64,000 nt of DNA, taken from the NCBI GenBank assembly GCA_964270895.1, contig OZ185440.1; one strand, given 5' to 3'. This document shows, piece after piece, positions 214 through 60,670 of the stretch; the stretch's first letter is position 1; every line of letters begins with the position of its first letter. Under the pieces are notes generated by a model. It was not told the DNA's origin. It worked only from the letters and a program-made list of their open reading frames with translations, and made no database searches. The stretch comes from Podarcis filfolensis. Taxonomy: Eukaryota. The position numbers were made by a program, and so were the translations under genes.

Positions 214-3200
214 GTTCTGCCTACAAGCTTGTGTGTTATGTCACTAACTGGGAACAGTACAGGGACCCGCCAGCCAAGTTCACACCAGATAATATAGACC
301 CACATCTGTGTACTCATGTGATCTATGCTTTTGCTGGCATGGACAACAACCGACTTACCACTATAGAATGGAATGACGTGGAACTCTACAAGAAACTTAA
401 TGCCTTAAAGCAAAGGCAAGCAGCTCTCACAATGAATGTATTCACATCATGATGTTTGTTTAACGGCTGCTTCTAGACAATCCCTGACAATAGCAGCAGA
501 TGTAGAAGCAAAAGAAGGAAGAGTCTCATGGGGTCCCTTCATGAATTATGTGTTTAATAAATTAATTAAAGTACTTTTAACCCACACCTCACCACATGAT
601 TTCAGAGCAAGGTACAATACAAGTTAAAATACAACCAACACAATTCCAGTATATGTAGTTGAAAGAGCAGGCAAGAACACAACACATCTTAAAAATTACA
701 GTATATAAACTCTCAAGGAAACCACCCACAGGTTCCTTCATTGCAGAAACAGTACATTGATATTGTTCTCAATATCACACAAAAGCACAGGTAAACCGGC
801 AAGTTTTTACCTCACAGAGATAAAAGTGTCTCTGCCAATCATGCTTTCAGGGGGAGAGCATTTCTTAATTAAGGTGCCACCATAGAAAGGTCCCCATCCT
901 TTGTCACCACATAATGTTTTCCCCTTGGAGGAGCAACAATAAGAAGGGTCTCCTTCTAAGATCTGTGAACATGGGGAAGTGTTCCTTTAGAACTAAGACT
1001 TTTAAAATATTCACCTAAAAATATTAAGGGTGGAAGTGCCAAACAAGAGTTTGAAAGTATGTGTTTCCTAGAGATACTTGTCCAAGAGCTAGGATTGGCT
1101 ATGGCTCCTATGGAGCATACACATGATGGTAAATCTGTACTTTTTGCTATATAATGTGAAAAAAGTAATTTGGAGATGCCTGGCATTCAGGGGGGTGGGG
1201 TTGGTTGGAGTGATGGCTGATGTTTCCCTGTGATGATCATTTTTTGCCTAGTAGGATTCTGTAACTATGTTTCTGAAGACACTTGAGAGTGGAATGATAG
1301 TCATCAGCACACATATTCGTTTTGTTCTGCCCTGCCTTAATCTCTGATGAAAGAGCTTTTGCAGGTTTTTGAAGCACCAGGTTGGGGAAGACTGCCTTGC
1401 AGGAATGCAAAAGACAGTTATGAAAGGCTGCACGCTTGTTCTTTTCACTGTAATAGCATCTGCTTGGCCAGCCTTCTCTGTCCTTGCTTGGAACTGCCAG
1501 CAATCTCAAGAACAACAGCAAGCTTTTAAGTTCTGTCTCACTTTGGGCTCTGTCCCTGGGAGTTGCTTTAATTTCCCCAATGGCCCTGAAAAACTTTTGG
1601 GATTCTGCCCACACCCCTGAAAATGAACTAGAGGAGCTCTCAAAAGCTCTTTGGTTCTGAAATCTATATCCTACAATTATAAGGAGCAACTGGTGATGGA
1701 AGTCTTGGATATTTTGAGGTGGAGAGAGTAAAATTCCTTTTTAATTATCACAAAATATTTGTGTAATGTTAATTCCACTGTATCTTTTTCTTGCTTTCTA
1801 GGAATAATAAGCTGCTCACATTGCTGGCGGTTGGAGGGGGAAGCTTTGACAACCAGAAGTAAGACCCTTCTCCTTCTTATACTCATAGAAAGAGCAGAGG
1901 GTGTTCATGAGATATAGCTTCCTAAGAAATTTGTGATTTGGGACACCCGGCTTAAGGCATTTTGGAGAGCTTGAGTCTGACATAAAGAGCATTTCCTTTT
2001 CTGAGAAATGAATGTCCTTCAAAGATCAAGGAACATTTTCCCTCTTTTGTTTCTGTGTACACTATTATTCAGTGCGAGCCTCCTTCCCAGAGACGCAGTA
2101 CAGGCAGATAGTGGTTTTAATAAGAGAGTCTTTTTTTTAACAGATTAAAGAAGAGGGGGGAAAGGAAGAACCCCCCCCACCAACAAATGCAAGCTCCTTC
2201 TCCTCGTTGAATCATTCCACTTCCCTCATTTCTTTTCACTTGGAGAGGTTTGGTTGAAAAATCCCCCTAAATTTGGCCAAAACCCCAAAAAGAGTAAAAA
2301 GGGACTACTCCTAATTAGTAGAATGGGTGGGAGGGCACTGTGATGTAAACTGGCCTCACTCCACTCATATCTTGGGGTGGAGGAGTAATTTGATTCAGTT
2401 TATATTTAAAGATGAACTTACCAGCCAAATGGCCTGGCAGGCTGCCTTTTATCCTTGTCCTTGTGTGCATCCAGGAGTCCTGAGTCTTGTCCTGGGTGTG
2501 GGGCCAAGCGCCACCATTGACCAGTTGATCCCACACCCAGAAGAACACCCAAAAGGCCCTGCCGCCAGTGGCCAATTTGGCGGCAGGCAGATGATCCGGC
2601 CTGCCATTCGCCGGTTCATGGGAGTGGGCTTGGGGCCCTGCCCACAAAGCCGTAAGGGGCAAACGGACTTACCAAATTCATACTTTTTGAAAAATTATAT
2701 AAACTGAAACCTTCAGAATTCATACTTCTTCAAATTTTCCAGTGCGATTCCCCAGGTTATGTGTCCAACAATGCACATAGTAGACTAAAGTGTGCATAAA
2801 AATGCCTTATATTGGTGAAAATTACATCCAAAACTGTATTAGATTAGGGAAAATTTCTTGCAAAAATGTGTATAAAACTGCATATAAAAATGTTTATTAT
2901 GAGAAATTCACACTAAAATATTGAAGAATCCTCATGAGGAGTTTCAATTTATTTATTCATTTTTGTGGATTGTTGCAGAAATAGAAGCGAATTTAAGATT
3001 TTAAAAATTAGAAACTTGGAGAACCAATATCGACAGATTGGTCCATCCTTAGTCCCTACTGATGTCAAAGCTCTTCCATTTTATAGCAGCTGTTCATGAT
3101 GCCCAGCAAAAAAATAAGAGTGAAATATAGGGTGATGCAAGTTGTAAAAGGCAGCTGTCAAAAAATAACACATTTCTTCCAGGTTCACTTCCATGATATC

Positions 3201-6200
3201 CTCTCCAGCAAATCGGCAGACATTTGCCACCACATCAATCGATTTTCTCCGCAAACATGGGTTTGATGGTATGGACCTTGATTGGGAATATCCAGGTTCC
3301 AAAGGCAGCCCTGCAGAGGATAAGCATCGCTTCACCATCTTGACTCAGGTATGAAAATAAAATAATATAGATGTCCATCCCAGCTTCAGCAAAGGGTGCT
3401 GGAAGCCCCTAGGGAGATAGCATGGATCATACTTACTTTGACAAAAATGGTCAAAACCTTTCTTAAAAACAACAGTGAATGATTGTAACAGAGTTTCTTT
3501 ATTTTAAAATGGTATTTAAAATTAATTTCCTGGAATGTATACTGTAGTGATAGAACATATGAGTACCTCTGAGCATGTATAGAGTGCTTTTGTAATCACA
3601 ACCAGCCTCCATATATTTATTCTTCCACATGAAGAACAATGGTTGGTTTGGGTCCCAGTGACAAACAGTGTAATGCTATGAATATCTACTCAGAAGCAGG
3701 TTCCATTAAATTCAATGGGGCCTAAGTGACCATACCTGAGAGAAAGCACTATTAAACTTAATGGACTTTTCTTCTCAGTACACTTGTATTGGATAGCACT
3801 GTGAATTACTAAATATGACAAAGAAGACTCAACCATCAAGAAGAAGAATTGCTCAGATGCAATCAAATAAATAAAAATAAATAGGCATGCCCAACTTGTG
3901 TGTGGAGATTTATCTTTATTTATTGATTAAGTTTATATACCATCCTTCATCCGAAGATATTTCTCATCATGATCTGTATGGGTGGAAATTTCCAGCCTGC
4001 AAAAGGCCAGCTGTCCTTTGAAAGGTGTTCTGTTCAGTTGCACATGAGCAGCACCCAACTGATCCTGCTATTTCTCTCTGAAGGAACTAATAGCTGCTTT
4101 TGAGGAAGAGGGCAAAAGAACAGGACGCCCACGGCTGTTGCTTTCTGCTGCAGTATCTGCTAGCAAAAACACCATGGATGCTGGATATGAAGTTGCTGCC
4201 CTGGGGAAGTGAGTCACATGGTTTCTGCTAAGCGACATGCCCTGCGTCAGAATCTCTGTTGAACACCAGCTCTGAATGCTCTAACTTCTAGGTTTGGACA
4301 AATTGCTAAAGAACTCAGGAGAAAGCCGTTCAAATGAAAAGCCTCTGTTTTTCCTCCCTTCTCTTTCTGCTTTATTGCTATTATTATTACTTATTAAATT
4401 TGTGCTGCTGCTGAACCTGTACACAGTACACTACACTGGCTCTCCCAAAGATCCAGCCCATTTCAATAATTTTGAACCTCCTCTGGGGATTGATGTCCTG
4501 GTTTTGTAGGCTCTCATAAACAGTGGTTTGTAGGGTGGTATTTATTGACCATTGTGTCTATGCAGCCATACTGTGCTGTAGGCTTTATATAAATAAATCT
4601 GGGCCTCATTCTACAGTGCCTTTGGAAATATTTCTGAGGGCTTTTAAAGGAGCTGCTACATCATGCTTATGTAATCACAGGTTGTTGTTTTTTAAATTAT
4701 TTGTCTATGAATCAAAATAACTGTCTTATTATTATCACTAACAGTGTGGCTGTTGGATCATAGATTCCTTAATGTTTGAAGAAATTGTTCCTTCATCTTG
4801 CCATTCCTTTCTGTGTGCATCCAGGAGTCTTGATTTAATCAACGTGATGACCTATGATTTCCATGGAAGTTGGGCACCTCAAACAGGACACAACAGCCCC
4901 CTGCACAGAGGTCTACCTTCCTATGACTCAACGCCCTTCTTCAACAGTGTAAGAACAAACAACACATTGTTGTTGTTGTTTAGTCGTTTAGTCATGTCCG
5001 ACTCTTCGTGACCCCATGGACTAGAGCATGCCAGGCACTCCTGTCTTCCACTGCCTCCTGCAGTTTGGTCAAACTCATGCTGGTAGCTTTGAGAACACTG
5101 TCCAACCATCTCATCCTCTGTCACCCCCTTCTGCTTGTGCCCTCAATCTTTCCCAACATCAAGGTCTTTTCCAGGGAGTCTTCTCTTCTCATGAGGTGGC
5201 CAAAGTATTGGAGCCTCAGCTTCACGATCTGTCCTTCAAACAACACATAACCCAATCTTAAACTCATAGCTAAATTCCAGTGACAATTTCCCCCACCCAA
5301 TGCACTAAAAACTGAATCAAGCCTAAGCATTAGGGTGGCCACTTGTACACCACCAAAAAGGAGGAGATGCGTCATGAAAAAGACCTGAACAGATTTTCAT
5401 GTCCTAATTTATATGTCTAGATGCAAAGTTAGAACCAATGTCTATAAATTCAAATAGACATAGAAAACATTTTACCATAGTGGGGAAGATGGGACCAAGT
5501 GACCTGTGTGCTAGCTCAGTCTGCTGTCCAGGAGCTGTTACTGGGTGACTTCAAGGCCCCTGCTCTCCCTTTGCATGATTCCTTATCTTTAAACTGGGCC
5601 TGGACTGGACAACTCTTCAAAAAGAGGACTTCCTCAAAGAGAGGACTCTTCTCTGTCCAGTGGAACACATGGCCACCCTAGCAAACATGGGTGGGTGATT
5701 GATGATGAGGCTCAAAATACATGTTCTGTGTAGCTGCATGAAGAATTCCTCTTTTAAAAAAAAGAAAGTTCAAAGGCAGAGTATATTTGAGTGAATTTCA
5801 GCTCAAAAATCACCTTCCCCAAGCTCCCCCAAGCTTTTTTTTTCATTTACAAACATTTTTGGAAGACACAGAGACCCTGACTTCCCACAGATGACAAAGC
5901 AGCTTGAGGAGGTTGATCCAAAGAGGGAAAGGGCTAAGCAGCCCCTCACTGCCTGCCCTTCCTCTCAGCTCCTCCCAAATACTTTTGTCTTTTAAAAAAG
6001 TAAACTCACCGAGGAAAGAATGACAGAAGTCTGCATAATTTGTCTGTGCTTCAGGAATATGCCATGAAATACTGGAAGGACAATGGAGCGCCAGCTGAGA
6101 AACTCATGATGGGCTTTCCAACATATGGACAGTCTTTCAAACTTGCTAGTTCACGAACCGACGTTGGTGCTCCAGCCAGTGGTGGAGGTTCTCCTGGACA

Positions 6201-8962
6201 GTACACCAAAACTTCTGGGATCTTGGCATATTACGAGGTAAATGGGCCTTTGGCGCTTTATTACAGAATATTGACGACTGAGAGCTACTATAATGTAACT
6301 GATCATGTTGGGGAGGCAGAGTCAATTCCCACAGCTGTAAATCTCAAAGGGTGGGCTTGGGCAAATCATTTTCTCTTAACACATCTTATTTTGACAGGGT
6401 TTTTGTGAGGATAAAGTGGGATGATTCTGTGGAAGGTGCCTAAGACATAACCAAAGTCTTAGGCAGCAATCCCATGAATATTTATTTGGGAGCCATGCCA
6501 CGGGTACAGCCCTGTTCAGGCCTTCGCCTGAATAAATGTGGACTAAAACCAGGGAAGGGACAGAAGTGTCCATGTATGTTTCTCTGTTTCAGACCTTCCT
6601 GAACTGAGAGGGAAGATCTGAAAGCTGACACTTAAGTGCCTTCAGCAGAATGTGCTTGGCATCTTCACTGTGCTTGGGCTCCTTGCCTTATCAGGGTTTC
6701 TGGTGGGAGGAGTCCAAGCACCTATGGGAACATTTGGGATGGCACTTGGGTATGCATTTCTGCTCTCCGCTTTCCATTTTCAGTCAACAAGCATTTAGAG
6801 GAATGCCTGATTGGGGGCTTCAGTGTTCCGTCAATAATGCATAGGACCAGCATGTAGAGCTGCAATCCATTGCTAGGGAGCACCTGTTATTCAATGCAGT
6901 GGGATGTACTTCTGAGTCAACAAGTGTAGGCTCACACTTTTAGAGAAAACCAGAACAATTTGGTTACCATATACTGGAGTGGGGATTCTTGTCCAGCTCA
7001 AGGGCCACAGGCAAATATTGGTAGAGTGATGGATGCGACTTAACTTAGCAAAGTAGTTTACCTTCCAGCCACACAAAATCCATAGGTTTCATCCATCCAT
7101 AGGCCTCCATCCAGACAAGCTTAAGGTGTGATCACATGCCAAGAGCACATTCTAGCCAAGCAAAGGCACTCATGGAGGGTGTGGTGCAGGGCCATTGAGG
7201 CGTGTGCCCTGGGGAGAGTCCTGAAGGTCAGAGGGAGAGGCTGTGGAAGGTCTCATTTGGCTGTTGTATACAGTAAATTAATGCTGCAGACCATCAAACG
7301 CTGTACTCTTCTAGCAATAAAATAATCAATGATTCTGATAGGGAAGCTTGGACTGATTAACTTTTAGGATTATAGACTTTGTTTTTATTTTTGTTCATAC
7401 CCCCTTGAGTTTCTGCTCTTTATCTAAACAGGGATTCTATCATTTTGACAGGTGTGCCCATTTTTAAAGGGAGCTACCAAGGGATGGATCGAAGAACAGA
7501 AGGTTCCTTATGCTTTCAAAGCTGGAGACTGGGTTGGATATGACGACGAGAAGAGTTTTCAGTTTAAAGTGTGTCACTGCTTTGTGATAATTGCTACATC
7601 CTATGAGAATGAAAATCCTTTAGGCCCTCTAGCTGCTAACCAAATTTACAGCCACATTCTCACAGTCATGGGCTGTATCCAATGCCGTTATTCCACTAGT
7701 GCAGCAGACTCATGCAATGGAACTTCCCCCTTTTCTCCTATCCCTAGTGGCCCCTGACATGAAAAGTTTACAGCATCCTCTGGAACAGATTTTGAGGGCA
7801 CACAGGGAGAGGAGCGGAATTGGAATTGGAAGTCCAGTTGCATGGGTGGACCTTTGTGTACACATGTTCTTTAAGGCTCCATGTTATTTAAAATCTTCTT
7901 CTTTTCCCATGATACACCGTTCTGTTCCTCAACTCCATTCTTCCCCCTCTAACAGACAATCCGAATTCTGGGGCCTCTGAACATGTTTTTCTTTTTTTTT
8001 TTTTAGTGTTCAACTCAAATATTTTTTGGTACTTCTGGAAACCCTGGGATCCCCCAGGGCATGCTGATACCCTCTTTTATTTATAAGTAGCATTGTTTGA
8101 GTACCATCCTGTTGGCTGGCACACAACATTTTGGAAGTAGAAGGAGTGTACAATATTAAGAATTGTCTGCCTCATTCTTATTTCATCCTGGGAGTAAACA
8201 GAAATAAAATTCTGCTTCATCCCCTACACAAAATTAATGTTAGCAGCTCCAAGTGCTCTTTAGCCACCCTCTGTGGTTACCTCACAGAAAGAAGGAGCAT
8301 CTTATTTATGTCACCACAGAGTGGCACACTCTCGATTCACAAAAAATGGGTTACTGAGCCACTGTACGTTAGCTCAATTTCCTTTGAATGTTATGCTTAA
8401 ATGTAAATTGTATCTTTTTGTAGACTGCTTTGAGGTTGTTGGTTTTTTCTTTTTACAATCAAGTGGTATATAAAATGTCATCTAGTCCAACTCCCTGTTG
8501 TGTAGGAATCACAACTAAAGCACACATGACAGGTGGCCATCCAATCTCTGCTTAGAAGCTTTCAAGGAAGGAGAGGCCACCACCTCCCGAGGGAGTCCAT
8601 CCACTGCTAAACAGCTCTTACTGTCAGAAAGCTCTTCCTGATGTAAAGCCAGAATTTCCTTACGTATATTGTAAATGTGCTGCAGTGTCCAGAAGGAATT
8701 TGTAGTTGCCTGTTATTAGCAAATGATAGAAGAGGCATGTTATGTGACAACTATTATGGAATGGGTACATAAGCACTAGTCTGTGGGTTATTTACAAATG
8801 TCCCCCCCCCCCTCAACTTCTTTGCAGGCTGAGTTTCTGAAGAGGGAGAATTATGGAGGAGCCATGGTTTGGACTCTGGGGATGGATGACTTCTCTGGCA
8901 AATTCTGTGGCCAAGGAGCCAATGTCCTTGTGAATAAGCTTAAGGGTCTCCTAGGAAACTGA
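214..8962 (+). CDS. Gene A: GH18 chitinase (5'-partial), catalytic motif intact, no hinge/CBM14; OVGP1-lineage candidate
   Basis: Exons 214-415 (GC donor), 1802-1858, 3183-3348, 4084-4208, 4825-4948, 6055-6237, 7452-7568, 8828-8962 (TGA 8960-8962). Lengths 202/57/166/125/124/183/117/135 keep frame. Motifs [46 protein letters not shown]. Signal-peptide exons 1-2 are not in the window; about 387 aa if they total 55 nt as in the paralogues. Confidence 0.92.
4968..5236 (-). mobile_element. RTE/BovB-type LINE 3' fragment in gene A intron 7
   Basis: Minus-strand translation [25 protein letters not shown] is typical of the BovB/RTE RT C-terminus. (CAA)n tail; direct repeat CAAACAACACAT at 4956-4967 and 5237-5248 (TSD). 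Confidence 0.85.
8480..8645 (-). mobile_element. CR1-like 3' fragment
   Basis: GTCATCTAGTCCAAC...GGCCATCCAATCTCTGCTT...CCACCACCTCCCGAGG resembles reverse-oriented reptile CR1 3' ends; recognised by eye only. Confidence 0.5.
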
Positions 8963-9088
8963 GGTAATGACAAATTAGGCTGCAAGGCGCATGTTTCATT
9001 AAGCTACCAATCTATCGTCCAGTGAAGTTTGAATTAGGCATACTAATTACATCAGTTTCAACCCTTATTTTCTAACCTCTCTTTTTAG

Positions 9089-12528: not shown

Positions 12529-15500
12529 ATGGGGAAGATGCTGCTGTGGGCAAGTGAGTGATCCTGTGTGTAATTTTACGTCTTGAGAAACATAAAGAGA
12601 CATTTCTTCCTAGAAACAAGGGAGGTGAACTTTGAGCTTAGACTTGGGAATGAGAACACCATCAGGTTTGCTTATGAGACAAATAACCCTGGAAATGAGG
12701 TGTTTAGCAAATTGAGTCAGATGGTTTTATGCATACTGTAATGGTGTTTTGTTGTTTTTTAATCTTTTGTAGGTCTGGCCATTTTGCTGCACTTGCAGCT
12801 TGGTAAGCAGGATTCTTTATTGCTCATAAATTTATTCCTCAAAAATAGATGGAATATCTGAGACAAATTGAGGGTGGGGGAGATGCTTTCAGGTTTGATA
12901 TTGTCGTTTTCATTTCTGCCCCCTCCTGGGAGCTTGCAATACTAAGGGTGTGATTATGAGTAGCAGCAACCAGCACAAAGGAATGTAACATTAAGAATGA
13001 GAGACTGTATCTTTGCATTATATAAATCCACAGATTTCTGTAAAGGAAATATATGGTCCCTCATTCTGGGGGTGATAGGAGTTGTAGTCAAAAACACCAG
13101 CAAAGGCTGGGCTAGAGACTATAACTTTCTAATTGAGTATTGTGCATGTATCTTAATCACAATGAGTTTCCTAAATCAAGAGGTAAGCGCACAGGGCCAG
13201 ACTGAACTAAGTTGTTGCACGAGCAGAATGAGATCTGCTTGTGCAATGGGACTTTGCTCTGGAAGGCTGAAGGAAAACCTAGAACAGGTTTAAGAGGTGG
13301 GAGGAGAGGGACAAAATTCCTGTTGCGTGAGCTGACCTCATTCCATTAACACATATAGTATGCCGGTTTTAGAGTCAGTTGCTTTGATTTCCATGTTGTT
13401 CTTGCCTATGACATTCACATCACAATGTTCTTTCTTACCTCAGGATCTTCTTACAAGCTGGTCTGTTATTTCACGAACTGGTCCCAGTACAGGCCTGATC
13501 CTGCTAGATATAAACCAGCAAATGTGGACCCCTGCCTGTGCACACATGTCATCTATGCCTTTGCTACTATGAGCAATAACAAGATCGCCCCCTATGAATG
13601 GAATGATGACGTCCTCTATCCACAGTTCAATGGTCTAAAAGAATAGTTAGTAAATTCTTTAAACACTTGGTAATTACGAAGAATGAACACAGATTGGTTA
13701 ATCTCAAAATAATAAGGCTTGTTTGGACCTGATCTGATTTTCTAAGCCCCCTAGTTGTAAATGTTTGATTCAGTTTTTTGGGGAAAAACAACAACCCTGG
13801 AAGGTTAATATTAGCTGCTGCAGAGCTGCAAAGTACTCTCTACTCTCTGCTCACTAGGCCAATGGCCAGAAGAGAGAAGGGCAGACAAGTCAGTTCTGGG
13901 CATAGCTGTCAAGTGTCCCTTATTTGAAGGGACAGTCCCTTATTCCAGTGCCATGTCCCACTGCTGTCCCTTATTGATGGATGTCCCTTAAATGTCCCTT
14001 AAATGATGTCCCTTAAATTTCAAAGGAAGCAGCTCCTCTCCCTCCCTCCCTGCTGGCCAGCGAGGAGGGAGGCTCCAACTGTGTTGCTTGGCTGTGTTGC
14101 TCACCCAATAAGAAGTCTAAGAACGACTGGGGGGTGGAGCTTGCATGCCTTGTGTGTGGCTAGTTAATGCAAGCTGAGGGGGTTTTTGAATACTGGATGC
14201 CATTTTGTTGCACATGCTGCTGCAAACTTTGCAGTGCAAAGCCAGGCCGGGGAACCATCTTAAGTTGAGGCTGCATAGGCCTTGTGGTGCATGTGATTCA
14301 GATTCTATTCAGTTGAACCTCTGGTTACAAAGTTGGTTGGACAGTGTTCTCAAAGCTACCAGCATGAGTTTGACCAGACTGCAGGAGGACAGGAAGACTG
14401 GAGTGCCTGGAACAGGTGAGGCTGCAGGTCCCTTATTTTGGCTGCTGGTCCCTTATTTTCAAGGCTGCTGGTCCCTTATTTTCAAATCTGTAAGTTGACA
14501 GCTATGGTTCTGGGCACTGCTACAACAGCCCAGAGTCTCCCTAGTGCTAAAGAATCTATCCTGTGCTATTGTCTAATATAGGGATCTCAGATCTGCAGGA
14601 GTCTTAGTCCAGGCAACCCATCACTGTTGAAACCCGCTTTAAAAAGGTAAAGGTAAAGGACCCCTGACAGTTAAGTCCAGTCGCGAATGACTCTGGGGTT
14701 GAGGTGCTCATCTCACTTTACTGGCCAAGGTAGCCGACGTTTGTCCACACAGGGTTTTTCCGGGTCATGTGGCCAGCATGACTAAGCCGCTTCTGGAGAA
14801 ACCAGAGCAGCACACAGAAATTACCTTTCCGCTGCAGTGGTACCTATTTATCTACTTGCACTTGACATGCTTCCCCTCAAAAATATGAGACTGACTTATA
14901 CTCTGTCAGAGCATTAGTTCTGTAGTCAAACACTATTCACACTGATTGGCAGCTGCTGTCAGGCAGAGGGCTCTTCCTCATCCTGAGATCCTTCCATTGG
15001 AATGGCCACTGGCTGATTATTATTATTATTTTGCATACAGTACATGCTCTCTACTCACTGAACTGACTGTTTTATGCCTTTTGCCTGCCAGTTCCTTCTT
15101 GTATCTGTGTCCCAGAACATGCCACCTCTCCAGGACTCAGGGAAAACTTAACTTGACATTAAGCACATTATTTAGTATAGGAGAGTCCCAACCAGAGAGT
15201 CTCAAGGGAGGTCCTAGCATGGGCAGAGAAGCTGTTACAACATTAACAATCTGGAAATGCTGTGGGGACAATGGCTTGATGTACCTGTCTGCATGTCTAT
15301 TATTTGCACTGGGAGGTAATCTCTTCCTAGTACCAGTGACAGCCTTCCTCCCAGGGCACAAATAGGGGTTGTGGGGAGGCTGCTGCTCGATATCAATGGA
15401 TCAAAGTCCCTTCCCATGATTCTGTGGCCCCAACCCAGATCACTCCTCATGGCTATTTAGTAAAAAAAAAAAAAAAAGAACAAGCACACAGTCCTATGAT

Positions 15501-18500
15501 CAACACAGTATCTAGTTTGGTCCTCAGACCACGCTTAATGGCAGTTCACGAAACAATAAACGATGATGGGAAAAGCAACAATTGCATATTATACATTTAT
15601 TTCCTAATTTTTCCAATCCCTTCCATAGCAATGAGAAAATGGTTACCCTTTTGGCGATTGGAGGATGGAATTTCGGCACCCAGAAGTGAGAACTTTTCTT
15701 TCACATGTATAATGAACAAGATGGGGAGGGGAGGGGGGTAGTTTGTGGCTACTGCTGCTGGCCTGCTGAGGAAGAGGCAATGAATGGATAAAAGGGATGT
15801 GGAGGATTTTCACGAACCTCTGGTGGATAGAAAGATAAGACCACTGTGGAGTTAAAGGAGGAGAGTTGGGGGTTTTTTTTGAAGAGTCAGAGGGAAGTAT
15901 GGGATAAGCAAGTACAGTAGAAACATTTTGTGGGGAAGGAAGTGGTAAGAGAAGCTGAAACAAGCTAGCATTGCTTAATTTTGTGGTTCATATCGTGTAT
16001 ATCCTCATACTTTCAGTAACTTAAAAACAAATCCGGTTTTGTTAGGTTCACCACAATGGTTGCTACAGCTGCTAACCGCAAGACTTTCATCGATTCAGTG
16101 ATTACGTACCTTCGTCAGTATGGGTTTGATGGGATTGATCTGGACTTTGAATACCCAGGTTCTCGGGGCAGCCCCCCTGAGGATAAGCATCGTTTCACTA
16201 TTTTAGTCCAGGTGAGGAAGCTTTGCCCAGCATCCTGTGAACATCGTGCCTTGCTCTCTTTGCATAAACAAATGTAATACGGTATGTGAATGAGTCGATT
16301 ATTTCAGATCCTGAAATCACAAAGCAGATGCTGATTGATATGGTTGCTCAGTCACACATTACCTTTTCTCATGTGATGGGAGTTATCCTCAGCCAGGAAG
16401 GCTCCCATCAACAACAGACACGCTTGTCCAAATAAAGCACTAATTCCAGCTAAATGTTGCTAGAAATAAGGTGCCACTGCCAATTACACAATCACATAAT
16501 AGAATATCCTTTCCTAGAAAAAGGAATATACTTCACTCCATTTCCAGGTTTATAAGAATGTTAAAATAATTTGAAATTTCTTCATATTTAGCTATGTTTA
16601 AATGACAATCAGCTGAGTGTACTACTACTACTACTAATTTATTATTTGTACCCCCCATCTGGCTGGGTTTCCCCAGCCACTCTGGGTGGCTTCCAACAAA
16701 GATGAAAAATACATTAAAATGTCACACATTAAAAACTTCCCTGAACAGGGCTGCCTTCAGATGTCTTCTAAATGTCAGGTAGTTGTTTATCTCTTTGACA
16801 TCTGATGGGAGGGCGTTCCACAGGGCGGGCGCCACTACTGAGATTAGTTAGATAAAGAAGCAATCTCAGAAGCAATGGCTGAGCTTTCTAAATTCCTCCT
16901 TATATGTACATAATGGCACCATAATGGCACTTTGGTTCATATACCAAAGAAGTGGGATTTCTTCATATATATATATAAAAGATGTTGCATACCACCAATT
17001 TTTGAAACCTTGCACACAATGAATTAGCTAGAACTGAATGCAGCTGTTAACTTTACTCACCCATGCCCTTCTCCAGGAAATGCTGGCTGCTTTCTCAAGT
17101 GAAGCCACCAGGAGTGGGCAACCCAGACTGTTGATCACAGCAGCTGTATCTGCTGGCAAAGCAACCATTGATGCTGGATATGAAATTGCAGAGATAGGAA
17201 AGTAAGTGACAATGTGCTAAATTGGGGACTTGTGAAAATAGGACAAAGCAAGGCAAAATTCATTATTCATTTGGAGGGAATTATTAATTATATTAAGGAA
17301 AAGGTGCATACAGAGAAATATATACATGTCAACAATATGAGACAATATATTTGTGCAGTTTTGCCAAAGATTTAAACTTGGTTGTTTGACATTCAAGAAT
17401 TTAGATGCAGCATTTTGAATTCTTTGAGTGACCACTAAAGGTCTAGTCACAGTTCAATATAAGTGGCTGCAATATCCACTTACCTGGGAGTAAGTCCCGT
17501 TTAACTTTATTAAGTTTACAGATAGATATGCATAGGATTGCAATGCTGGACCCAAAGGACACTAAGCTTTAGCTTTCTAGTCAATGTCCTCTTTAGCTTG
17601 TTCTGTGATAAAAATGAACAGTGTAGTCAACTTGAACTTCATTTGTTGGGAAGGTTGGATGAGAATTTAACAACTGGACAAATATCCTTGCAGAAAAGGG
17701 GAGCAGGAGCTGAGGATCATATAGCTAGCTGTTTAGCAAACTACAAGTCAGATGTACACCATATTGTTCAAATGCATACAGTTTTTGTATGGTTTCATGC
17801 AATCTTCAAAAGCTAATGTGAAAGACAATTGGGTTCAGCCCACCAGTATCAAGGGGATCTTTATTTCAGCGTATGGATCCATTAGGCAAGTTGTTATTAC
17901 TCTGCTTTTTATTTATTTATTTGCACAAGGGTTCTAGATTTCATCAGTGTGATGACCTATGATTTCCATGGAGGATGGGACACCTTCACAGGTCACAATA
18001 GCCCCCTGCATGTGGGATCTGCAGATAAAGGCGATTTTGTGTACTTCAACTGCGTAAGGAAATGCTAACAAACTATTGTTTGCTCAGAGCCAGTAAAAAA
18101 AATGGTCAGTTCATACCTATATTTATTATGTTCATATTGAAAGGAATTTGCCATGAAATACTGGCTAGAAAATGGGGTTCCTGCTCAGAAGCTTATGATG
18201 GGGTTTCCTACTTATGGCCGTACCTTTAGGCTTACCACAGCTGACACATCGGTTGGCGCTCCTGCATCTGGTGCCGGATCCATTGGACCTTACACAAGGG
18301 AAGCTGGTTTCTGGGCTCATTATGAGGTAAATGAAACATTTAAAAAGGACCAAAGTTTAAAAGCATGCAGTATTTAAAAATATCTAAGCAAAGTGCATTT
18401 TGTCTCTCAGCAGTTATAATCCTGTTTTACAATACTAATGTCTTGCCGTTCACCCATCCGGGTTGCTTATAATCAAGATTACATACAATTGTTTTATATA

Positions 18501-43511: not shown

Positions 43512-43564
<53 letters not shown>

Positions 43565-44476
43565 AAGCCAGGATTTGGGACAGAGTTTTGGGCCTCATTC
43601 AGAAGAATAAACAAGAACTCCTCACCCCAAAACCCCCAAGAGGGTATTTTGAAATAAATGAAGGAATGCACATTACCATGTAAAGGGGGAGGGCATGAAT
43701 TCAACTCAGAAATTATCTCATTATGTTAATGCTATTCCTTAGGAACAGGCAGATCCATTTTGTTTATCTCCCAAAATAAGCTCCTGAAAGTGGCACGAGT
43801 GGCATAGGAGATGCTCAACACAGCTCAATTGCTTTCGCTCTACCTGTTTATTACTTACCCAGCTGAGCATTCAGCAAAAGCGCCAGACCTACAAAGGAAA
43901 TAAAGAGTAAAGAAATAAGCCATTGAGGTAGGTGTGTGTGTAAGAGAGCCCAATCATATGGACTTAAGAATGAAAGGCATTCAAATTAATGATGAACCCA
44001 AGAATGTTTTGCATTAAATAATAATGGCTCTGAAATTTTTTTTCCCTAAGGAAAAACAAGCAGTTTTCCCTAATATGCTGTTTTGGATGTTAGTTTCACT
44101 AATATATGTGGTTTTATGCACATTTCCCCTTAATATATGCATTTTTGTTTGGTTGGCAAACTGCATCACAAAATTTGGAAAAGAGTGCATTTCGAAGCAT
44201 AGCCGTGTTTCAGTTTGTATATTGGTTTGAGAAATGCAGACAGGTAGTCAATAAACTGCAAACAAAATTGAATTTCCCCTCCATCCCTACTCAGAAGTAA
44301 GTCTTATTATGTACAATGCAGCTTTCTCCCAACTAACTGTTGATAGAATTGCAGCCTCAGTCACATTTCAGACTGGCTCATTCATTACAGTGTTTAAAAA
44401 TAAAACTCAATAACACAATGTATAGACATAAAGTGGTCATTATAGACTTACCGGTAAGGAGAATCAACTTGGCCAT
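32511..44476 (-). CDS. CHIA: Gene C: acidic (mammalian-type) chitinase, CHIA paralogue, 480 aa
   Basis: Exons 44476-44452, 43888-43859, 43440-43239, 42143-42087, 41671-41506, 40935-40811, 40387-40264, 35921-35736, 34408-34289, 34193-34052, 32776-32511; all GT-AG; 1443 nt. [26 protein letters not shown], Ser/Gly hinge, CBM14 ending CECCNWA*; AATAAA at 32444-32449 (minus). Confidence 0.95.
32822..33296 (+). mobile_element. RTE-clade LINE 3' fragment in gene C intron 10
   Basis: [18 protein letters not shown]...[10 protein letters not shown]-terminal [11 protein letters not shown] zinc knuckle, (GAA)n tail; 8-bp TSD AGGATCAG (32814-32821, 33297-33304). Confidence 0.85.
33563..33738. mobile_element. 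hAT-type MITE (same family as 49961-50118)
   Basis: TIR CAGTGGCGTAG / CTACGCCACTG; exact 8-bp TSD ATGCCACC. Confidence 0.85.
36020..40168 (+). mobile_element. L1/Tx1-clade LINE, 5'-intact and 3'-truncated, antisense in gene C intron 7
   Basis: About 1.2 kb 5' UTR; coiled-coil ORF1 from 37277 (frameshifted); ORF2 from ATG 38209 with APE endonuclease (SWNVNG, LQETH, NIYAPN, LGDFN, GRIDQIW, SDH) and RT ([23 protein letters not shown]) ending at KGTRQG. The 5' boundary is approximate. Confidence 0.92.
40530..40635 (-). mobile_element. Short Penelope-like terminal fragment with degenerate hammerhead-like motif
   Basis: Minus strand CTTGATGAAGAGTTCTAGAGAACTCAAAAGC: a TGATGA core and GAGTTC/GAACTC stem, but GAAA reads AAAA. 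Confidence 0.4.
42590..42885 (+). mobile_element. L2-like LINE fragment in gene C intron 3
   Basis: Translation ...[19 protein letters not shown] resembles the L2 RT C-terminal motif (LDYCN.LY.GL). Confidence 0.6.
43512..43563. repeat. (TTA)n microsatellite
   Basis: Direct reading. Confidence 0.95.
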
Positions 44477-52662: not shown

Positions 52663-52820
52663 GCAGGAGAAGCAGGTGAAAAGAATAGCAAAGCCTGCAT
52701 GCCATGCAAGTAAATTGACACAGAGGAAAGAGCCATAGGTTTTGCTGAATTTTATTTCACTTTTACAGCTACATGGAATGTCGGATTGGGAAGGCTATGG
52801 AGTTAAAAAACCTGATCACT

Positions 52821-55800
52821 TCATGCCCAGTTGCAGCAGGAGCAGCTGGCATCAAAGACAAGACCCGTCTGGCAATGCTGCAGGTAAGTCCTGCCGTTCA
52901 CACAGTGGTAAAAGCTGTTCTTGTCTGTTGGGTCTGGGTATAGGCCTCCAGCTCTGCTAGCACAGAATCCACTGCCTCCGGTGCTGGGGCTGCCACCAGA
53001 GCCACTGCTTGGGCTGCCACCAGATCCACTGCTTGGGCTGCCACCGGAGCTTCCTCCACCACCGCTGGGGGCTGGTGGGATTGGCTCAATGGGCTTGGAT
53101 GGGGCTTTGCAACCTGGAAGAGAAGCAGAGGGTAAGCCATCTCAGCTGATTCATCTCTCAAATAACCACTACTGGCTCAAAATGTGAATTCTACATCATT
53201 CTGAACTTGATTTAAGGGATTCGGCCTACATGACATGTGTTTGGCTTTTTCCATAAAGAAAACCTGCCTTGTACTTTCTCCCCAGTGTGTGATCCACATC
53301 AGTGTGAATAGAGATGCAACTCCCATCAGCCCCAGCCAGCCTGGCTAATGGTCAGGGATTATGGGAATTGTAATCCTAAACATCTAGAGGGCACCAATCA
53401 ATCATGAGCACAAGGAAAAGGCTTAAAATTTTTTTTTTATTTAAAAGACCTCTGATTTCTTATTCTACTCTACATCTGCACAACTTGTAATCCATTGAGC
53501 TGAATACAGGTCACCAGCTATAAACTGTGGCCTGGCAGTTTTTTGAGAACTTGTCTTTTTCTGTTTCCAAGTAGGTAGGAAGAACTGAAGGTTAATTCAA
53601 CCTCTGCTTGGCTGTCATATACAGATGGTGGGTCATGAGTTGTACAGTCCAGCTCAAATCCTCCCAGAACTTGAGGGTCCCTGTGGCTGTAAATCTAAAG
53701 TACTTGGCTATCTGTGGAGTAGGTCAGGAACTACAGCTCAGTGGTAGAGTACATGCTTTGCATGCAGGAGGTCCCTGCTTCAGCCTTTGGCATTTTTAGT
53801 TTAAAGGGTCCAGAACCTGGTGATGGGAAAGACCCTTGAGATCTGTGGTCTAGATGACACCTGAGCTAGATGGACTGATAGTCTGTCCTAGCATAAGGCA
53901 GCTTCCATTGTTCTTAATTTATGAATACATAGGTTCTGCATTCAGTGCCAGTGATATGATCTCCAAAATATACCTTCTCTTTCACTCTGGACTGCAGCAG
54001 CCCTTTCTCCCTGAGTCTTATCGCTCCCTGATTCTATAGTTGTGGTGAATTCTTCTTGGTTGTTTTGCCCCCATCCTTTAATAATGCATTCTAATTTTTT
54101 GCCCTTTGAAACCTTCCAAATCCAACTGTTCTCATTCTCTCTTTTTTTTTAAGTGTTACCATTGATATCAAAATGTATCGAGCATGTTCTAAACAGGCCT
54201 AAAAGTGACTTAACTGACCTTGGTACCTCAGTTTGGAGGTTAGTTCTAAAATAAGCAACAGTGACTTGTTTTTCAGCATTATGAATTTTTGCTGGAACTT
54301 TGGCTTTCACAATTGTTTTGAGAACTTTTCCTGCTGCTGCTACTTACTAGCACTCTGCAGTCCGAGAGCGTTCTTCAGGGTGGTGATCAAGGGGTATTTG
54401 CCTTGATTGCAGAAAGTACCAGTGAAGTCATCCAAGTCAAGAGACCAAACCATAGCACCTGCAAAGTTATTCTTCTTCAACCACTCAGCCTGTCAGATGC
54501 CAAGAAAGATGCCCAAGTCAATCTACTATATAGAGAACCTGTACTTAGTGGCATTACATCAGCCATAGTCCTCATACCTTGATTTTGAAACTCTTGGTGA
54601 ACCTACCAAGACATTCTAATGTACCAGAATGAATGTATGCTTTTGTGAGATTGGTACCATACCTTGATCTGGAAGCTCTTGATGTTGTCATAGCCCAGCC
54701 ACTCATTTCCCTTGTAGGCATAAGGCACATCTTGAGGAGCATCCCAAGCTTGAGTGGCTCCATTCTTCAGGAAGGTGCAGATCTAACAGAGGAAATGAAA
54801 AAGGCACCTTGTAAATCATTGCGGGACTCTGTCTTGGTTGCTGTCTCATAATGCTATGTGCATAGTGCAGAGAAGTGAACTGAACGTATCACTGCACAAA
54901 TCTGCATAGGCATCATAAAGCTTATAAGTATTTCCTCCATGGCTTAAAAAGGAGGCACAATGTGTATCAAGAGTTGAGAATACCTTATTGGCTGCATAGT
55001 GAAAAAAGTTATTATCTTGTCCTCAGTTATCTGAAAGTCCTGCCTACCCCAAAAACCAATGTGCATTAGCCACATTACTTCATCTCAGTATAATCTTGAG
55101 CAGAAATGCTAAAACCCAGGTGCCCTAGCTAGTGATATCCATACAAAAAATGATCCCTTGGTCCCTATGGAGGAATTTTTTTCTTGCTTTCTGTCTGGCA
55201 CTGAGAAAAATCTCACTGGCTGCTAAGCTTTAGAAACATTTTTTGCAACACTGGTTTTGTGCGAACAGCATATTTTCCAAGCCATTAGGCCAAAATTTAG
55301 TTGTTGCATCTTTGTAGGATTTCTTATTTGATTGGCCTATCTTTAGAATTATATTCTTCATCTGTATAGTGTAAACTGAGTGACGCAAATAAATATTTTA
55401 ATGGATTGTGGTGGGAAAAGTGAACAAACCTCATAGTAAGCCCAGAAGCCAGATTGTCTTGTATATGGTCCAGCAGGCCCAGCACCAGTTGTGGGAGCAC
55501 CAACAGCTGTGTTGGATGGATCGCTGAGGATGAAGGTGTGTCCATAAGTTGGGAATCCAACAATGAGTTTCTCAGCTGGGGCACCATTCTTCTTCCAGTA
55601 GTTCATGGCATAGTCCTACAAAGGCAAATCATTTGTTACTCTCTGCTTGCAAAGTGGAACGTTAATTTCTTCATTTTTTTAAGGTTTAGTTCCTGGCAGG
55701 CTTTGAAGCACCCTGTAAAAATAGGCTTCCAGCTTGGGATGAGAGAATCTGCCAGTTGAGGGTTTTCTCTCTCAGTTTCTTCTTTTTTCCACCCTTAAAT

Positions 55801-56923
55801 TTGGTTCTCCACATTTCCGTATCAGCGTATGATTTACATTAAAGTAAGCACTTTTGCCTTATACACATTTTTTTTGCAAAGCAATTTTCCCTAATACAAT
55901 GCCTTTTTGTATGTTATGTTCACTAGTGTATTATTTTTTAATGCACATCTTATCCTAGTATATGTACTTTTGACACATTATTTTCCTGAAGAATTGCATT
56001 GCAATATTTGGAAAAGTGTGAATTTCAAGGGATGGCTATGTTTCAGTTTACATGTTGTTTCAAAAAGTGCAAATTAGGCAGATTGACCTTTAAATGTCTC
56101 TCCCAGCCCTACTTTCAACTTATACTTACAACATTGAAGTAGATGTTTCCACCAGTGTCTGCAGGACCTCTGTACAGAGGGCTGTTCTCTCCAGTGTATC
56201 TCTCCCAGGAGCCATGGAAGTCATAGGTCATCACATGGAAATAGTCCAGATACCTGTGAGGAGATTAAATGTATCTGTGTCCAGTTCTTCTTCTTTGCAA
56301 CTATTAGTAATATGTTGAATAAACCCTATGCTTCTAAGGCTTTTGCAGTCTCATCTTCCATAAACATTACCTCTCTAGACCATAGCCCATTTTCTGCTAT
56401 GCAGTAGCACCACCATTCTTTTTTCTGACTATATATGATAGCATTTGATGTATAATTAGACCCATAAATGCAGTTCCATAGTGTAAGCCCATCACAGGCC
56501 CAGTTTGCTCTTCAAAACAGATCATTATTGTGACTTTGACTTTGGAATATTTGATCATTGGGTTTTTTTAGCCAACCTTCTTAGGTTTGTCCTTCAGGAT
56601 GAGTATCTATAGCTTTATTAAAGTAATCAACAGAGGAAATAGTATCTGTGGCTGCCTTGTCGCCTGAAGTAACTCTGTGTGCTAGGACTGGCTGTAAGGT
56701 ACACTGTTCTCCTAAAACCAGCCAGTATGCTAATACTGCAGCTGCCTCTACGCCAATGATGCTGGCATAGTGATTTTACCAATGACACATACTGGCTTGG
56801 TTTCACTTTAACGCACAGTGTGCAACTGATGAACAATACGACACACATCAGATGATTCAAAATAACATTAATTGTAAGGGTATCTTCACCTATGCATATA
56901 CAAAAGACAGAAGTTAAATTTAA

Positions 56924-56956
<33 letters not shown>

Positions 56957-59900
56957 CTAAGCACCTAAAATACTGTACTTACTGGCCAAGCTCAGGAATC
57001 TGGTAGCCTGACTCAATATTGGAAAGACCAGCAGCAACAGCAGCAGTGACCATGAGTCTGGGTCTGTTCACTTGTTTGGCTTCCTTCTCAAAGGCTTCCA
57101 ACATTTCCTACAAAGCAAACAGTAAGGTAAATGTGAATTTTCTGACACAGCCCCACAATCTTGTTACTGTTCGGGTTTTGAGCCAATCCTATGAATTTTA
57201 GCCAACAAAATCATTAAAGTGACAATTTCAGACTATAAAAAATGCCTATGAATAAAAATTTCTTGCAAAAAGTAAGAGGTGAGGAACCTGTGGCCCTGCA
57301 GATGTTGGTCTACCACCATCCCTGACCACTGGCCATGCTAGCTTATGCTGTTGGGAGTTGTAGTGAAACAACAACTGGAGGACCAGAAGTTGCCCCACTC
57401 CTGTTTTAGGTGTTGTCACAGGAAGCACCATTTTAGAAGAGGCACGCACTTCTGTGTGAGATAGATGAAAGCCTGTCTCTTCTAAAATGATGCTCACCAG
57501 TTTTGGTTTTTGTAGATAACGATATTAAAAATAAAGACCCCATCAATCTGAGGCAATTTTTAATTGATAGCAAGGTTTTAAAAGATTGATAAAACCTATT
57601 AACCGAGTAATGGGACAGTCATACACATGCTAACTTAGAAACAGGCTCCACCATCTTCTGTAGGGCTTACACCCAGGTGGTTGTGTGTAGGATAGCAGCA
57701 TAAATGTTGTAGCCCTATGTAGCATTATTGTTATGCTGCTATGGCAATGGGAGACCGCTGCTCATCTCTGCTGGTGAGAGTGACTTCCTTCCTTGATTTT
57801 AGGGCAGCAGTAGGCAAATGGTGCCCTCTATTGTGGACTACAGCTCCCATCAGCTCAGCCAGCAATGGTCAACGGTCAGGAGCAGTGGGCGTTGTGGTCC
57901 ACAGTATTTGGTTTTGGCCACCCTAGGTTAGGAGAATAAAGGCAGAGATAAATTGATGCTAAACTATCCAATCTGGCTTCTCCATTTCTGGGTGGTGGTG
58001 GGGAAATAAGAACAACATAATCAGTGGTTTTACCTTAACCAATAAAGTAAAGAGGGACTTATCCTGAGGGGTGCTGCCTCTAGAGCCAGGGTACTCCCAG
58101 TCAAAGTCCAGCCCATCAAACTCGTACTGGCGCAAGAAAGTGATGACAGAGTTGATGAAGGTCTGGCGGGTCTCAGGAGTGGCAACCATTGCAGTGAATC
58201 TGTAATGTGGCCATCAGAGGGTAGAAGATAATTACCTACTTATTATGTGCATTCTTCTCTCTATTACTAGGATGAAGTATACAAGCGTTGCTTCAACTTA
58301 CGGTGCTGTTCCAAAGTTCCAGCCTCCAATTGCCAGAAGAGTCTTCAGGTCCCCATTCCTGTCATGGAAGAGATTGCAGAGATTAAATCTACCCTATTTC
58401 TGGAACAAGGAGTCCCGAGTTGGTGCCATCTTGCTATCCATTTTGTGTTTGTTTATATAATCTTGAACCCCATTTTCTTATGACAGATGATCTGTCAAGT
58501 AGTCTAGAATGAGTCACTTTTTATTATTGGTTTGCATCCCAACATCAGCTGACAACCTTGTAGTATTGTAGCTCCACATGTACTCAAACTTTCTTGCTTC
58601 TTTGTTCTATGTAGCGCTAGGCTCAGCTAGGTTACAACACTGGCCATTGGATCCCTCTGGGCAGGAAGGCATATGATAGTGCTTTCTGTTCCAGTTGAGC
58701 CTCATATAAACAAGGCAGAAGCAGAATGTGGGAAGGGTGGGTGACCATTATTCATGGATACTCACTGGTTTTTCAAGCCATTGAAAGATTTATAAAGAGT
58801 GACGTCATTCCATTCAATGGTTGCAATCTCATTGTTGCGCATCCCAGCAAAGGCATAGATCAGGTGAGTACACAGACAAGGGTCAATGTTGTCGGGCTTG
58901 TATTTCCCAAGGCCTGGTCTGTATTGGCCCCAGTTGGTGAAGTAGCATGATAGCACATAGGCAGAACCTATCAAGACAAATAGGACAGGTTATAATAAAA
59001 GTTTAAATGGAATCGAGCAAGACTGAAGGGTGAGGAGAAGAAAGACAAGTGTGTATTTTCTTTAGCTATAATAAAACATGTATACCTGCCAGATCTTAGT
59101 CTATATTGCAGATTTGGCATGTCGTTATAGTAGATGCAGAGGAGCATTCATTGCTGTGATATCTAGGAGGGATTGCTGCAATATTCTTAGAGATAGACAC
59201 ATGCAGCTTAGTGTAATGTAAATGCACTAATTTTCTAAACATATTTTCTTTCAAAATATGCATTTCAAAATCCCCTTTAATGGTTTTGAAAGCTGGGAAC
59301 TGTGTTGCAACGTTTAGAGAAATGCAAAATACTATAAAAAGCTATGGGCTCCACTGAAAAGACCACAGTCTGCCACTGTGGAGACTGTGGTGTTTTTATA
59401 ATATTGGGTTTATTTACACATATATGCAACCTGCACCTATGATGGAGGGGTTCACAGCATTAACACCCACAGAGGCTCTTGTTTCTCCCAAAATTACAGC
59501 CTTGGATTCAAATGGAAATCAAACATTGCTCTCAAGAGGTGCTTTACCTCTAGGTCACATCACTGCAACTCAACTCTAAACTCAGGCGTTGTCTTTCTAA
59601 CTATCTATGAGTTGAGGGAAGGGCCCCACCCATTTGCTGCCTCACACAGAGCCACTTTCCTTTGTTTTCCTTAATGGCCCATCACCCAGGTTGTCACTCC
59701 AACACAGGAAGTGGCTAGGTGACACTTAGACATTAATTTAAAGAGCTGCTTTCCATACCTATTTGTGCATTCAGCAGGAGCACCAGACCTATAAAGAAAA
59801 AGGGAATAATTTGTAAATTAAATATGTATAAACTTTTATGAATTGTTTAGAAATCATAGTGTATCACTATTTAACTTTGAGAAGAGTGGCAAACAATTTC

Positions 59901-60670
59901 TGTTTTGATGAAAGACTTTGTTGTAGGCCTTATATTGACCGCTATATTATATAGTTATTCAAACACGATTTTAAATAGAAGCACATTAACTGCTTGAATT
60001 TTCAAATGAATTGTAATGGAGGTATAATTTACACTGTGCATGCTACTTGGAGGAGGAATAATTAATTTTCTTCCATAATTTGTACCTCAAAGGTATCCAT
60101 GGACTTCATTGCTAAGTATTATGCAGGAATTTTCAAAAACTGAAATTAATAGTGGGAAAAGAAGGGGTTGATATAACTGAATAAAAATCTGCAAGATTTT
60201 CAGTTGTCAGTATTACAGGGAACATACTTGGGTCTCCAGGAATTTTCCCCAACCTTATCTGGAGACACAAGGGACTGAACCAGGGACTATTTGCATGCAA
60301 AGCATGTGCTTTCCCACTGAGCGATGGTCATTCTCCAATGGAGGAAATTCCTGATTTCCAAATATCCCGAACAAAGAAAGCTTTCTCTCCACACTATGGA
60401 ATGGAGGGAAGCAACACTTCTGGTTTTGTAAGGAAATATGGTAGTGAATGAAATCTTTGCTATAAAATAGCAAGAATACAATAAACTTGCTCAGTTATTT
60501 TGAAATCCATTCAGTTAATTAAAAGTTGTTCTCTTTTAAATAATAGAATATGCACAAAAAAGGAAAGAATGAGAATTACAGAATGAGTTTCTTCCACCAG
60601 CAGAGAAAAGATACACCATTTTATGAATTTCAGATTTGTACTTACCGGTAAGAAGCATCAACTTGGCCAT
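52821..60670 (-). CDS. CHIA: Gene D: acidic (mammalian-type) chitinase, CHIA paralogue, 489 aa
   Basis: Exons 60670-60646, 59788-59759, 58967-58766, 58358-58302, 58199-58034, 57107-56983, 56253-56130, 55615-55430, 54782-54663, 54489-54348, 53113-52821; all GT-AG; 1470 nt. [26 protein letters not shown], (GGSPSSGS)n hinge, CBM14 ending CSCCNWA*; AATAAA at 52751-52756 (minus). Confidence 0.95.
52987..53050 (-). repeat. 24-bp coding tandem repeat in the gene D hinge
   Basis: GGGCTGCCACCAGA(G/T)CCACTGCTT x2 plus a partial copy; encodes GGSPSSGS units. Confidence 0.9.
56925..56956. repeat. (GACA)n microsatellite
   Basis: Direct reading. Confidence 0.9.

Follow-up and report, generated by a model that had tools for sequence, protein, structure and literature searches.

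The 64,000-nucleotide stretch of Podarcis filfolensis DNA analysed here (contig OZ185440.1; the whole stretch is referred to as the window) carries four chitinase genes of glycoside hydrolase family 18 (GH18), which we call A, B, C, and D, together with PIFO/CIMAP3, the gene for pitchfork. A six-frame scan of the whole window finds the GH18 catalytic motif DxxDxDxE at exactly four sites, two per strand, and an all-against-all comparison of the translated pieces gives four co-linear sets of homologous exons. The order is A(+), B(+), PIFO/CIMAP3(-), C(-), D(-). This is the order given in a preliminary description of the same DNA, and it is borne out by the gene models and by tblastn; the statement there that the catalytic motif is present in all four genes also holds, both in the motif scan and in alignment. 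Splice sites were set by phase and by agreement among the paralogues, and searches were made exon by exon or with database proteins, the spliced proteins being used only in local alignments and trees. Besides these four genes, no further GH18 or CBM14 remnants were detected in the window.

Genes B, C, and D are complete and are built alike, each with 11 coding exons that join across GT-AG introns into an uninterrupted frame encoding a two-exon signal peptide, the GH18 domain, a linker, and a CBM14 binding module with six cysteines (Pfam CBM_14, E 4e-11 to 7e-10). Gene B (12529..20205, plus strand) encodes 453 amino acids in exons 12529-12553, 12773-12802, 13444-13645, 15629-15685, 16046-16211, 17077-17201, 17930-18053, 18144-18326, 19070-19186, 19563-19704, and 20015-20205, with its catalytic motif (DGIDLDFE) at 16128-16151. 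Gene C (32511..44476, minus strand) encodes a 480-amino-acid protein of the acidic CHIA type in exons 44476-44452, 43888-43859, 43440-43239, 42143-42087, 41671-41506, 40935-40811, 40387-40264, 35921-35736, 34408-34289, 34193-34052, and 32776-32511, and its motif (DGLDFDWE) lies at 41566-41589. Gene D (52821..60670, minus strand), of the same type and 489 amino acids long, has exons 60670-60646, 59788-59759, 58967-58766, 58358-58302, 58199-58034, 57107-56983, 56253-56130, 55615-55430, 54782-54663, 54489-54348, and 53113-52821, with the motif (again DGLDFDWE) at 58094-58117. A TATAAAAGG box is found just 5′ of the ATG in both C and D. Gene A (214..8962, plus strand), modelled from its exons, is truncated on its 5′ side by the window boundary; eight exons lie inside (214-415, 1802-1858, 3183-3348, 4084-4208, 4825-4948, 6055-6237, 7452-7568, and 8828-8962), the motif (DGMDLDWE) is at 3265-3288, and there is no CBM14. 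Pfam GH18 (PF00704) matches fall on exons of A, B, and D, the GH18 domains of all four genes align over their full length, and the cleft residues Y27, W31, Y141, M210, Y212, D213, and W360 are conserved in A, B, C, and D. Pairwise protein identity is 85% for C and D, 60% for A and B, 57% for A with either C or D, and 59% for B with either C or D. The four genes are thereby confirmed as intact GH18 chitinases with a complete catalytic motif.

PIFO (23121..27180, minus strand) was recognised with the chicken "protein pitchfork" (XP_418050.1, P0379), residues 10-198 of which match five collinear minus-strand exons by tblastn. The matches run from 27178 to 23127, the best of them with an E of 1e-13 and 59% identity, and with good splice sites they give five coding exons at 27180-27038, 26715-26617, 25333-25194, 24040-23923, and 23192-23121, the last ending in the stop codon. 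When taken singly, the PIFO exons gave no match in a PDB sequence search, in Pfam, or in a word search restricted to 40-126 amino acids. PIFO is tail-to-tail with B, 2.9 kb away, and lies downstream of C on the same strand, so the chicken protein bears out the earlier placement of a minus-strand PIFO that splits the cluster between B and C. In chicken, Tiliqua, and Anolis, PIFO likewise lies downstream of CHIA on the CHIA strand, and the gene at the orthologous position in Tiliqua and Anolis has a faint SHIPPO-rpt match. The avian literature also places PIFO/CIMAP3 beside CHIA (PMC13029220).

The arrangement is conserved in other genomes. Positions 9-18937 and 42691-64000 of the window are collinear, in one orientation, with 56.924-56.989 Mb of P. 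raffonei CM049755.1, at 98.5% identity over the first section and mostly 94-98% (one short stretch at 86%) over the second. With the P. raffonei RefSeq proteins of 387, 453, and 489 amino acids, the products of A, B, and D share 99.6-99.8% identity (B 99.6% with P0363, D 99.8% with P0394), and with those of P. muralis, Lacerta, and Zootoca they share slightly less. On its plus strand P. raffonei has a gene with an 839-amino-acid product, then genes for 480 and 476 amino acids, A (387), and B (453); on its minus strand it has C (480), D (489), and then a 481-amino-acid gene. The three genes before A, on A's strand, all encode GH18 plus CBM14, and the gene past D, on D's strand, is a GH18 plus CBM14 gene 69% identical to D. 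The P. raffonei array comprises at least nine GH18 genes, with at least three upstream of A and one beyond D. The count of four, from which the preliminary description spoke of a four-chitinase cluster, arises because the window ends where it does. In the skink Tiliqua scincoides the order is A-type(+), B of 453 amino acids(+), PIFO(-), C-type(-), D-type(-); Anolis has a C-type gene followed by PIFO, and in chicken two CHIA genes and then PIFO occupy a single strand.

A mis-oriented block in the assembly would also give two chitinase pairs that face each other. We found nothing that favours such an artefact, which the preliminary description named as something that could refute it, and order and strands are identical in the independent P. 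raffonei chromosome assembly over the two collinear sections and again in Tiliqua scincoides, while the window contains zero runs of N. Because P. raffonei and Tiliqua show the same layout, an assembly inversion is very unlikely, to the point of being negligible. The preliminary description had also read the arrangement as a mirror of the human CHIA-PIFO-OVGP1 orientation, which it gave as established. The likeness to mammals stands, in that the strands are kept in P. raffonei and Tiliqua and the placental CHIA genes form two physical groups, CHIA1-2/OVGP1 and CHIA3-5, with PIFO as a synteny marker (PMC11789784). As an aside on annotation, the current P. muralis RefSeq models P0359 and P0370 (XP_077784250.1 and XP_077784249.1) are artefacts that fuse neighbouring genes: the 839-amino-acid model is A and B joined, and a 993-amino-acid "putative chitinase 10" appears to join two other members of the array.

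The two sides of PIFO differ in ancestry and in residues associated with acid activity. In a maximum-likelihood tree of 59 proteins (IQ-TREE), a CHIA clade that runs from coelacanth to mammals and includes birds, turtles, and mammalian acidic mammalian chitinase (AMCase) has support of 100/100; C and D fall inside it and A and B outside, so that the mixing of A/B with C/D that had been named as a refutation of the first reading is not seen. Nearly every member of the CHIA clade is marked by two single-residue insertions together with H208 and H269. Both insertions and the residues R145/H208/H269/A104 are present in C and D. The corresponding residues are K145/N208/Q269/Q104 in A and R145/S208/R269/Q104 in B, and neither A nor B has the insertions. 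In chicken Chia2, A104/H269 is linked to an optimum at pH 2, and altering these residues shifts the optimum to pH 5-6 (PMC13029220). Exon 8 of C scores 118 bits against the solved AMCase structure versus 63 against CHIT1 (chitotriosidase), a preference that exon 8 of A or B does not have. These comparisons support the view that C and D carry acid residue states and A and B non-acid ones. By clade and by residues, C and D are predicted to be secreted gastric chitinases with a low pH optimum. Thus, of an earlier proposal of an acid gastric pair and a divergent pair, the first half agrees with the acid-type residues and CHIA-clade membership of C and D. The second half is not supported: A and B are not sisters, B being a slowly evolving ancient orthologue (~78% identical to opossum) and A a fast-evolving gene without CBM14.

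The 85% identity of C and D might suggest a recent duplication, and this was considered and excluded by introns that cannot be aligned, by a mosaic of synonymous divergence (dS), and by the tree with an approximately unbiased (AU) test. The C protein shares 90-92% identity with its C-type counterparts in Sceloporus, Tiliqua, and Anolis and 84% with primate AMCase, and the D protein shares 89-91% with its D-type counterparts in Rhineura and Sceloporus. In the tree the lepidosaur C-type genes, tuatara included, group with mammalian AMCase and toad (Bufo) CHIA at 100/99, and the squamate D-type genes form a separate clade at 98/97, with both types present in Gekko and in Sceloporus. Forcing all lepidosaur C and D types together costs 46 log-likelihood units and is rejected (AU p 0.0145). 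Between C and D, exons 7-9 have a dS of 0.13-0.25, compared with 0.9-1.8 for exons 3, 10, and 11. In exons 7 and 9, C and D are 94-97% identical, versus 89-90% between C and its Tiliqua and Anolis orthologues, and elsewhere the reverse is true; the introns of C and D, including those between exons 7 and 9, cannot be aligned. From comparison of the sequences, we conclude that C and D are old paralogue lineages, found from geckos to lacertids and older than crown squamates, and that exons 7-9 (34289-40387 versus 54663-56253) have, alone among the exons, the signature of homogenisation between the two genes by gene conversion, which in part accounts for their 85% identity.

A lineage-specific expansion with functional partition in an insectivorous lizard was the reading that the preliminary description gave to the four genes. 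Podarcis does feed on arthropods, as is generally known, and none of the four genes is disrupted, all being under purifying selection (the ratio of nonsynonymous to synonymous divergence, dN/dS, is ~0.16 for C versus D). Among placental mammals, moreover, the number of CHIA genes retained follows insectivory (PMC5955627). However, orthologues of the B, C, and D types, along with a Tiliqua A-type gene, occur in squamates of other diets, and the C/D split predates crown squamates, as the presence of both types in Gekko and Sceloporus and the AU test indicate. The B, C, and D lineages are shared with skinks, geckos, iguanians, and monitors, and B and C with mammals, which does not support the notion of an insectivore's expanded system. 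Because the lineages are old and shared across diets, the ancestral genes have been retained, not expanded. As an account of where the genes came from, the expansion is already largely refuted, and we regard it as quite improbable; the most that can be said about diet is that the full gene set is retained.

Gene B, on the non-acid side, has a clear mammalian counterpart. Its protein is 78-79% identical to 453-amino-acid "acidic mammalian chitinase-like" proteins of opossum (Monodelphis), tree shrew (Tupaia), and aardvark (Orycteropus), with which it forms a clade at 100/99. The wider clade around B (99/95) also takes in a mammalian type of ~500 amino acids, amphibian genes, and the P. raffonei genes that precede A; the sister of this wider clade, at 86/84, is sheep OVGP1, the single partial OVGP1 sequence in the tree. 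In Tupaia and Chrysochloris the mammalian 453-amino-acid genes share scaffolds with AMCase. The tail of B consists of a short proline-rich linker followed by CBM14, and a mucin-like extension rich in serine and threonine is present in neither A nor B. By these comparisons, B is a 1:1 orthologue of the mammalian 453-amino-acid "CHIA-like" gene and slowly evolving. The position of OVGP1, the shared scaffolds, and the literature further suggest that B belongs to the CHIA1/CHIA2 lineage. CHIA1 and CHIA2 of the tree shrew are reported to be expressed in pancreas (PMC5955627). For B, a conserved chitinase, we would predict an optimum that is near-neutral or mildly acidic and a site of action outside the stomach lumen, by analogy in the pancreas or intestine.

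The frame of gene A is intact, alignment to P. raffonei places its two signal-peptide exons ~2.1 kb before the start of the window, and it is 99.7% identical, without gaps, to the 387-amino-acid P. raffonei RefSeq protein (P0352). The exon that comes first in the window is followed by a GC donor (AG|GCAAGC) at 416-417 (sites 414-419 and 1800-1802), which appears to be used because the P. raffonei protein crosses the junction ungapped. The stop codon, TGA at 8960-8962, stands one base ahead of a preserved donor, G|GTAATG (8957-8969), at the point from which the CBM14 exon is spliced on in B, C, and D. Gene A thus has no CBM14 because the TGA precedes a donor that is still recognisable, and no CBM14 remnant was found downstream of A in the window. 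Among the four genes, only A has W99G/N100S in the substrate cleft (1839-1844). Its exon 4 ends in "..QK", as in the non-acidic genes, and it has neither the paired insertions nor the H208/H269 pair of the CHIA clade. The stem branch of A is long (0.61). A chitinase-like gene of this type without CBM14 is found in Tiliqua scincoides (384 amino acids, 75% identical to A). In the turtle Carettochelys insculpta three genes follow one another on one strand, and the third of them (L012:21845-28848) is closest to A, at 67% versus 61% to B; only Pfam GH18 is on record for it, and it runs off the end of the fetched locus. The A-type lineage may be older than squamates.

A glycine in place of the cleft tryptophan is also seen outside Podarcis. 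The A gene of Zootoca ("GGGEF") shares the W99G of A ("AVGGGSF"), and a softshell-turtle (Pelodiscus) paralogue from another clade, P0218, has the same change ("AVGGGNF"). The A and Pelodiscus genes may represent convergent losses of this tryptophan. Loss of CBM14 and of W99 in A resembles chicken Chia1, which has no binding domain and is inactive (PMC13029220), and from this parallel it follows that an intact motif does not prove A active. After losing CBM14 and the cleft tryptophan, A is predicted to be a weakened or re-specialised enzyme or else a chitinase-like lectin.

The positions of A and B raise the question of OVGP1 (oviductin). If A, or A and B together, were its reptilian orthologue, then the locus would literally be CHIA-PIFO-OVGP1. 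Both genes are found on that side of PIFO which corresponds to OVGP1, the clade with B in it has sheep OVGP1 as its sister, and a working CBM14 is missing from A as it is from OVGP1 (PMC11789784); a grouping of A with the clade on the B/OVGP1 side is not rejected (AU 0.47). Against this, B has 1:1 mammalian orthologues of its own that coexist with OVGP1, and A has no mucin-like tail, ends right after GH18, and keeps DxxDxDxE. Gene A is also equally compatible with a place beside the CHIA clade (AU 0.47), and the branches of both A and OVGP1 are long. We therefore consider it rather unlikely that A, or A together with B, is the reptilian OVGP1.

Taken together, the window is very probably the centre of a conserved vertebrate GH18 array that flanks PIFO/CIMAP3 and consists of two convergent sub-arrays produced by old birth-and-death duplications. 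In one sub-array, D, C, and then PIFO share a strand, with D and C representing the classical acidic stomach-type CHIA clade. The opposing sub-array, with B, A, and the genes upstream of A, would represent the non-acidic lineage from which CHIA1, CHIA2, and OVGP1 of mammals descend. Old tandem duplications in a birth-and-death manner would have built up the array. Lineages of the B, C, and D types are older than the radiation of squamates, B and C are clearly matched by mammalian genes, and partial homogenisation of exons 7-9 of C and D by gene conversion would be a later step.

Several points weigh against this interpretation. The first exon of PIFO with its ATG (chicken residues 1-9) was not located, although it is expected between 27.2 and 29 kb. 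The tree contains no named human CHIT1, CHI3L1, or CHIA1-5 references, so the assignment of B to CHIA1/2 is indirect. The deep position of A is equally good on either side (AU p 0.47 both ways), and the lepidosaur C plus D grouping used in the AU test was defined with the tree already in view.

The locus represents, for squamates, a conserved array that is already known, and it is no new kind of system; RefSeq already labels these genes "acidic mammalian chitinase-like". No description of a squamate array turned up in literature searches directed at chitinase clusters of squamates. The two-sided CHIA/PIFO layout known in placental mammals, and in half in birds, is also intact in lizards, and hence its origin would go back to at least the amniote ancestor. 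Possible as well, and offered only tentatively, is a stronger version: that squamates keep the fullest living copy of an ancestral amniote (perhaps tetrapod) two-sided PIFO array of at least nine genes, that the acid-type C and D predate the split of lepidosaurs and mammals, and that A represents an independent sauropsid route to a chitinase-like protein with no binding module and an altered cleft but with the catalytic motif kept, a functional analogue of OVGP1 or the chi-lectins. Lacertids have an intact representative of each paralogue type in one genome, which makes them convenient for testing how pH optimum, binding module, and tissue expression are divided among duplicated chitinases.

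Other features of the window lie in introns and between the genes. Intron 7 of C contains the remnant of a long interspersed nuclear element (LINE)-type retrotransposon (37277..40221, plus strand, antisense to C), recognised by Pfam from Exo_endo_phos_2 at 38424-39221 and RVT_1 at 39430-40221; its open reading frame at 37277-37693 gives only weak, sub-threshold coiled-coil matches. This remnant accounts for the 4.3-kb length of the intron and for the skew in base composition at 36-40 kb. An interspersed repeat of ~350 bp, probably a short interspersed nuclear element (SINE), has copies 80-88% alike at 32017-32371, 61430-61784, 52427-52663 (inverted), and 14634-14864. C and D are each followed closely by a copy, a further one precedes D, and another lies within a B intron. 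The region between C and D has two inverted-repeat pairs, at 46773-47078/47476-47780 and at 50604-50893, the first with arms of ~300 bp that are roughly 85-97% alike and ~400 bp apart; a foldback element or a transposon end is possible. Long trinucleotide microsatellites, of GTT/TGT type at 12050-12110 upstream of B and of ATT/ATA type at 43500-43560 upstream of exon 3 of C, are the source of the poly-V, poly-C, and poly-I pseudo-frames in the list of open reading frames.

Some search results were set aside. A profile search of a representative library with exon 3 gave, for the most part, fragments and fused multi-domain models, and the 50% clusters of that library were too coarse for orthology; P0049 and P0029 yielded short contigs only; and an alignment of A exons to a cnidarian scaffold was poor and served for no search. 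Of the proteins P0479 and P0263, one is a vertebrate-type CHIA on a contig of 1.6 kb that bears the title [quoted passage not shown], and the other is a CHIA 75% identical to lizard C, in the range of bird CHIAs, that is flagged UNVERIFIED_CONTAM in a sturgeon assembly. Both entries look like contamination in public records.

Three known systems can be compared with the lizard array. In Atlantic salmon (PMC10234404), a stomach-specific acidic CHIA stands against CHIO, active chitinases elsewhere in the gut, and this division of labour resembles, as an analogy that implies no orthology of CHIO to the lizard genes, the one predicted for C and D versus B. Unlike the lizard genes, the teleost groups derive partly from whole-genome duplications and lie on different chromosomes. 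In birds, a Chia cluster is situated between BTG2 and CIMAP3/PIFO (Tabata et al. 2026, PMC13029220), with tandem CHIA genes followed by PIFO on the same strand and, as in the lizard, one paralogue that has no chitin-binding domain. The avian pH types are distinguished by residues 104 and 269, at which lizard C and D match chicken Chia2 (A104/H269). In chicken, however, PIFO is followed by a TAF8-like gene and chitinases are absent for 10 kb, whereas A, B, and further genes are kept in lizards, and the avian paralogues form a bird-specific clade, whereas the lizard types are older.

The third comparison is with the placental CHIA1-5/OVGP1 cluster (Emerling et al. 2018, PMC5955627; a 2025 Genome Biol Evol study of anteaters and pangolins, PMC11789784), which likewise consists of tandem GH18 genes with 11 coding exons, arranged in two groups with PIFO as the marker, and which has likewise been shaped by birth and death plus gene conversion. 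Gene B pairs with the mammalian 453-amino-acid genes and C with AMCase, while the lizard D-type genes group apart from mammalian AMCase. The lizard array differs from the placental one in having no mucin-tailed OVGP1, with the CBM14-less but motif-bearing gene A there instead, and in being fully intact with a larger non-acidic side, of at least five genes in P. raffonei.

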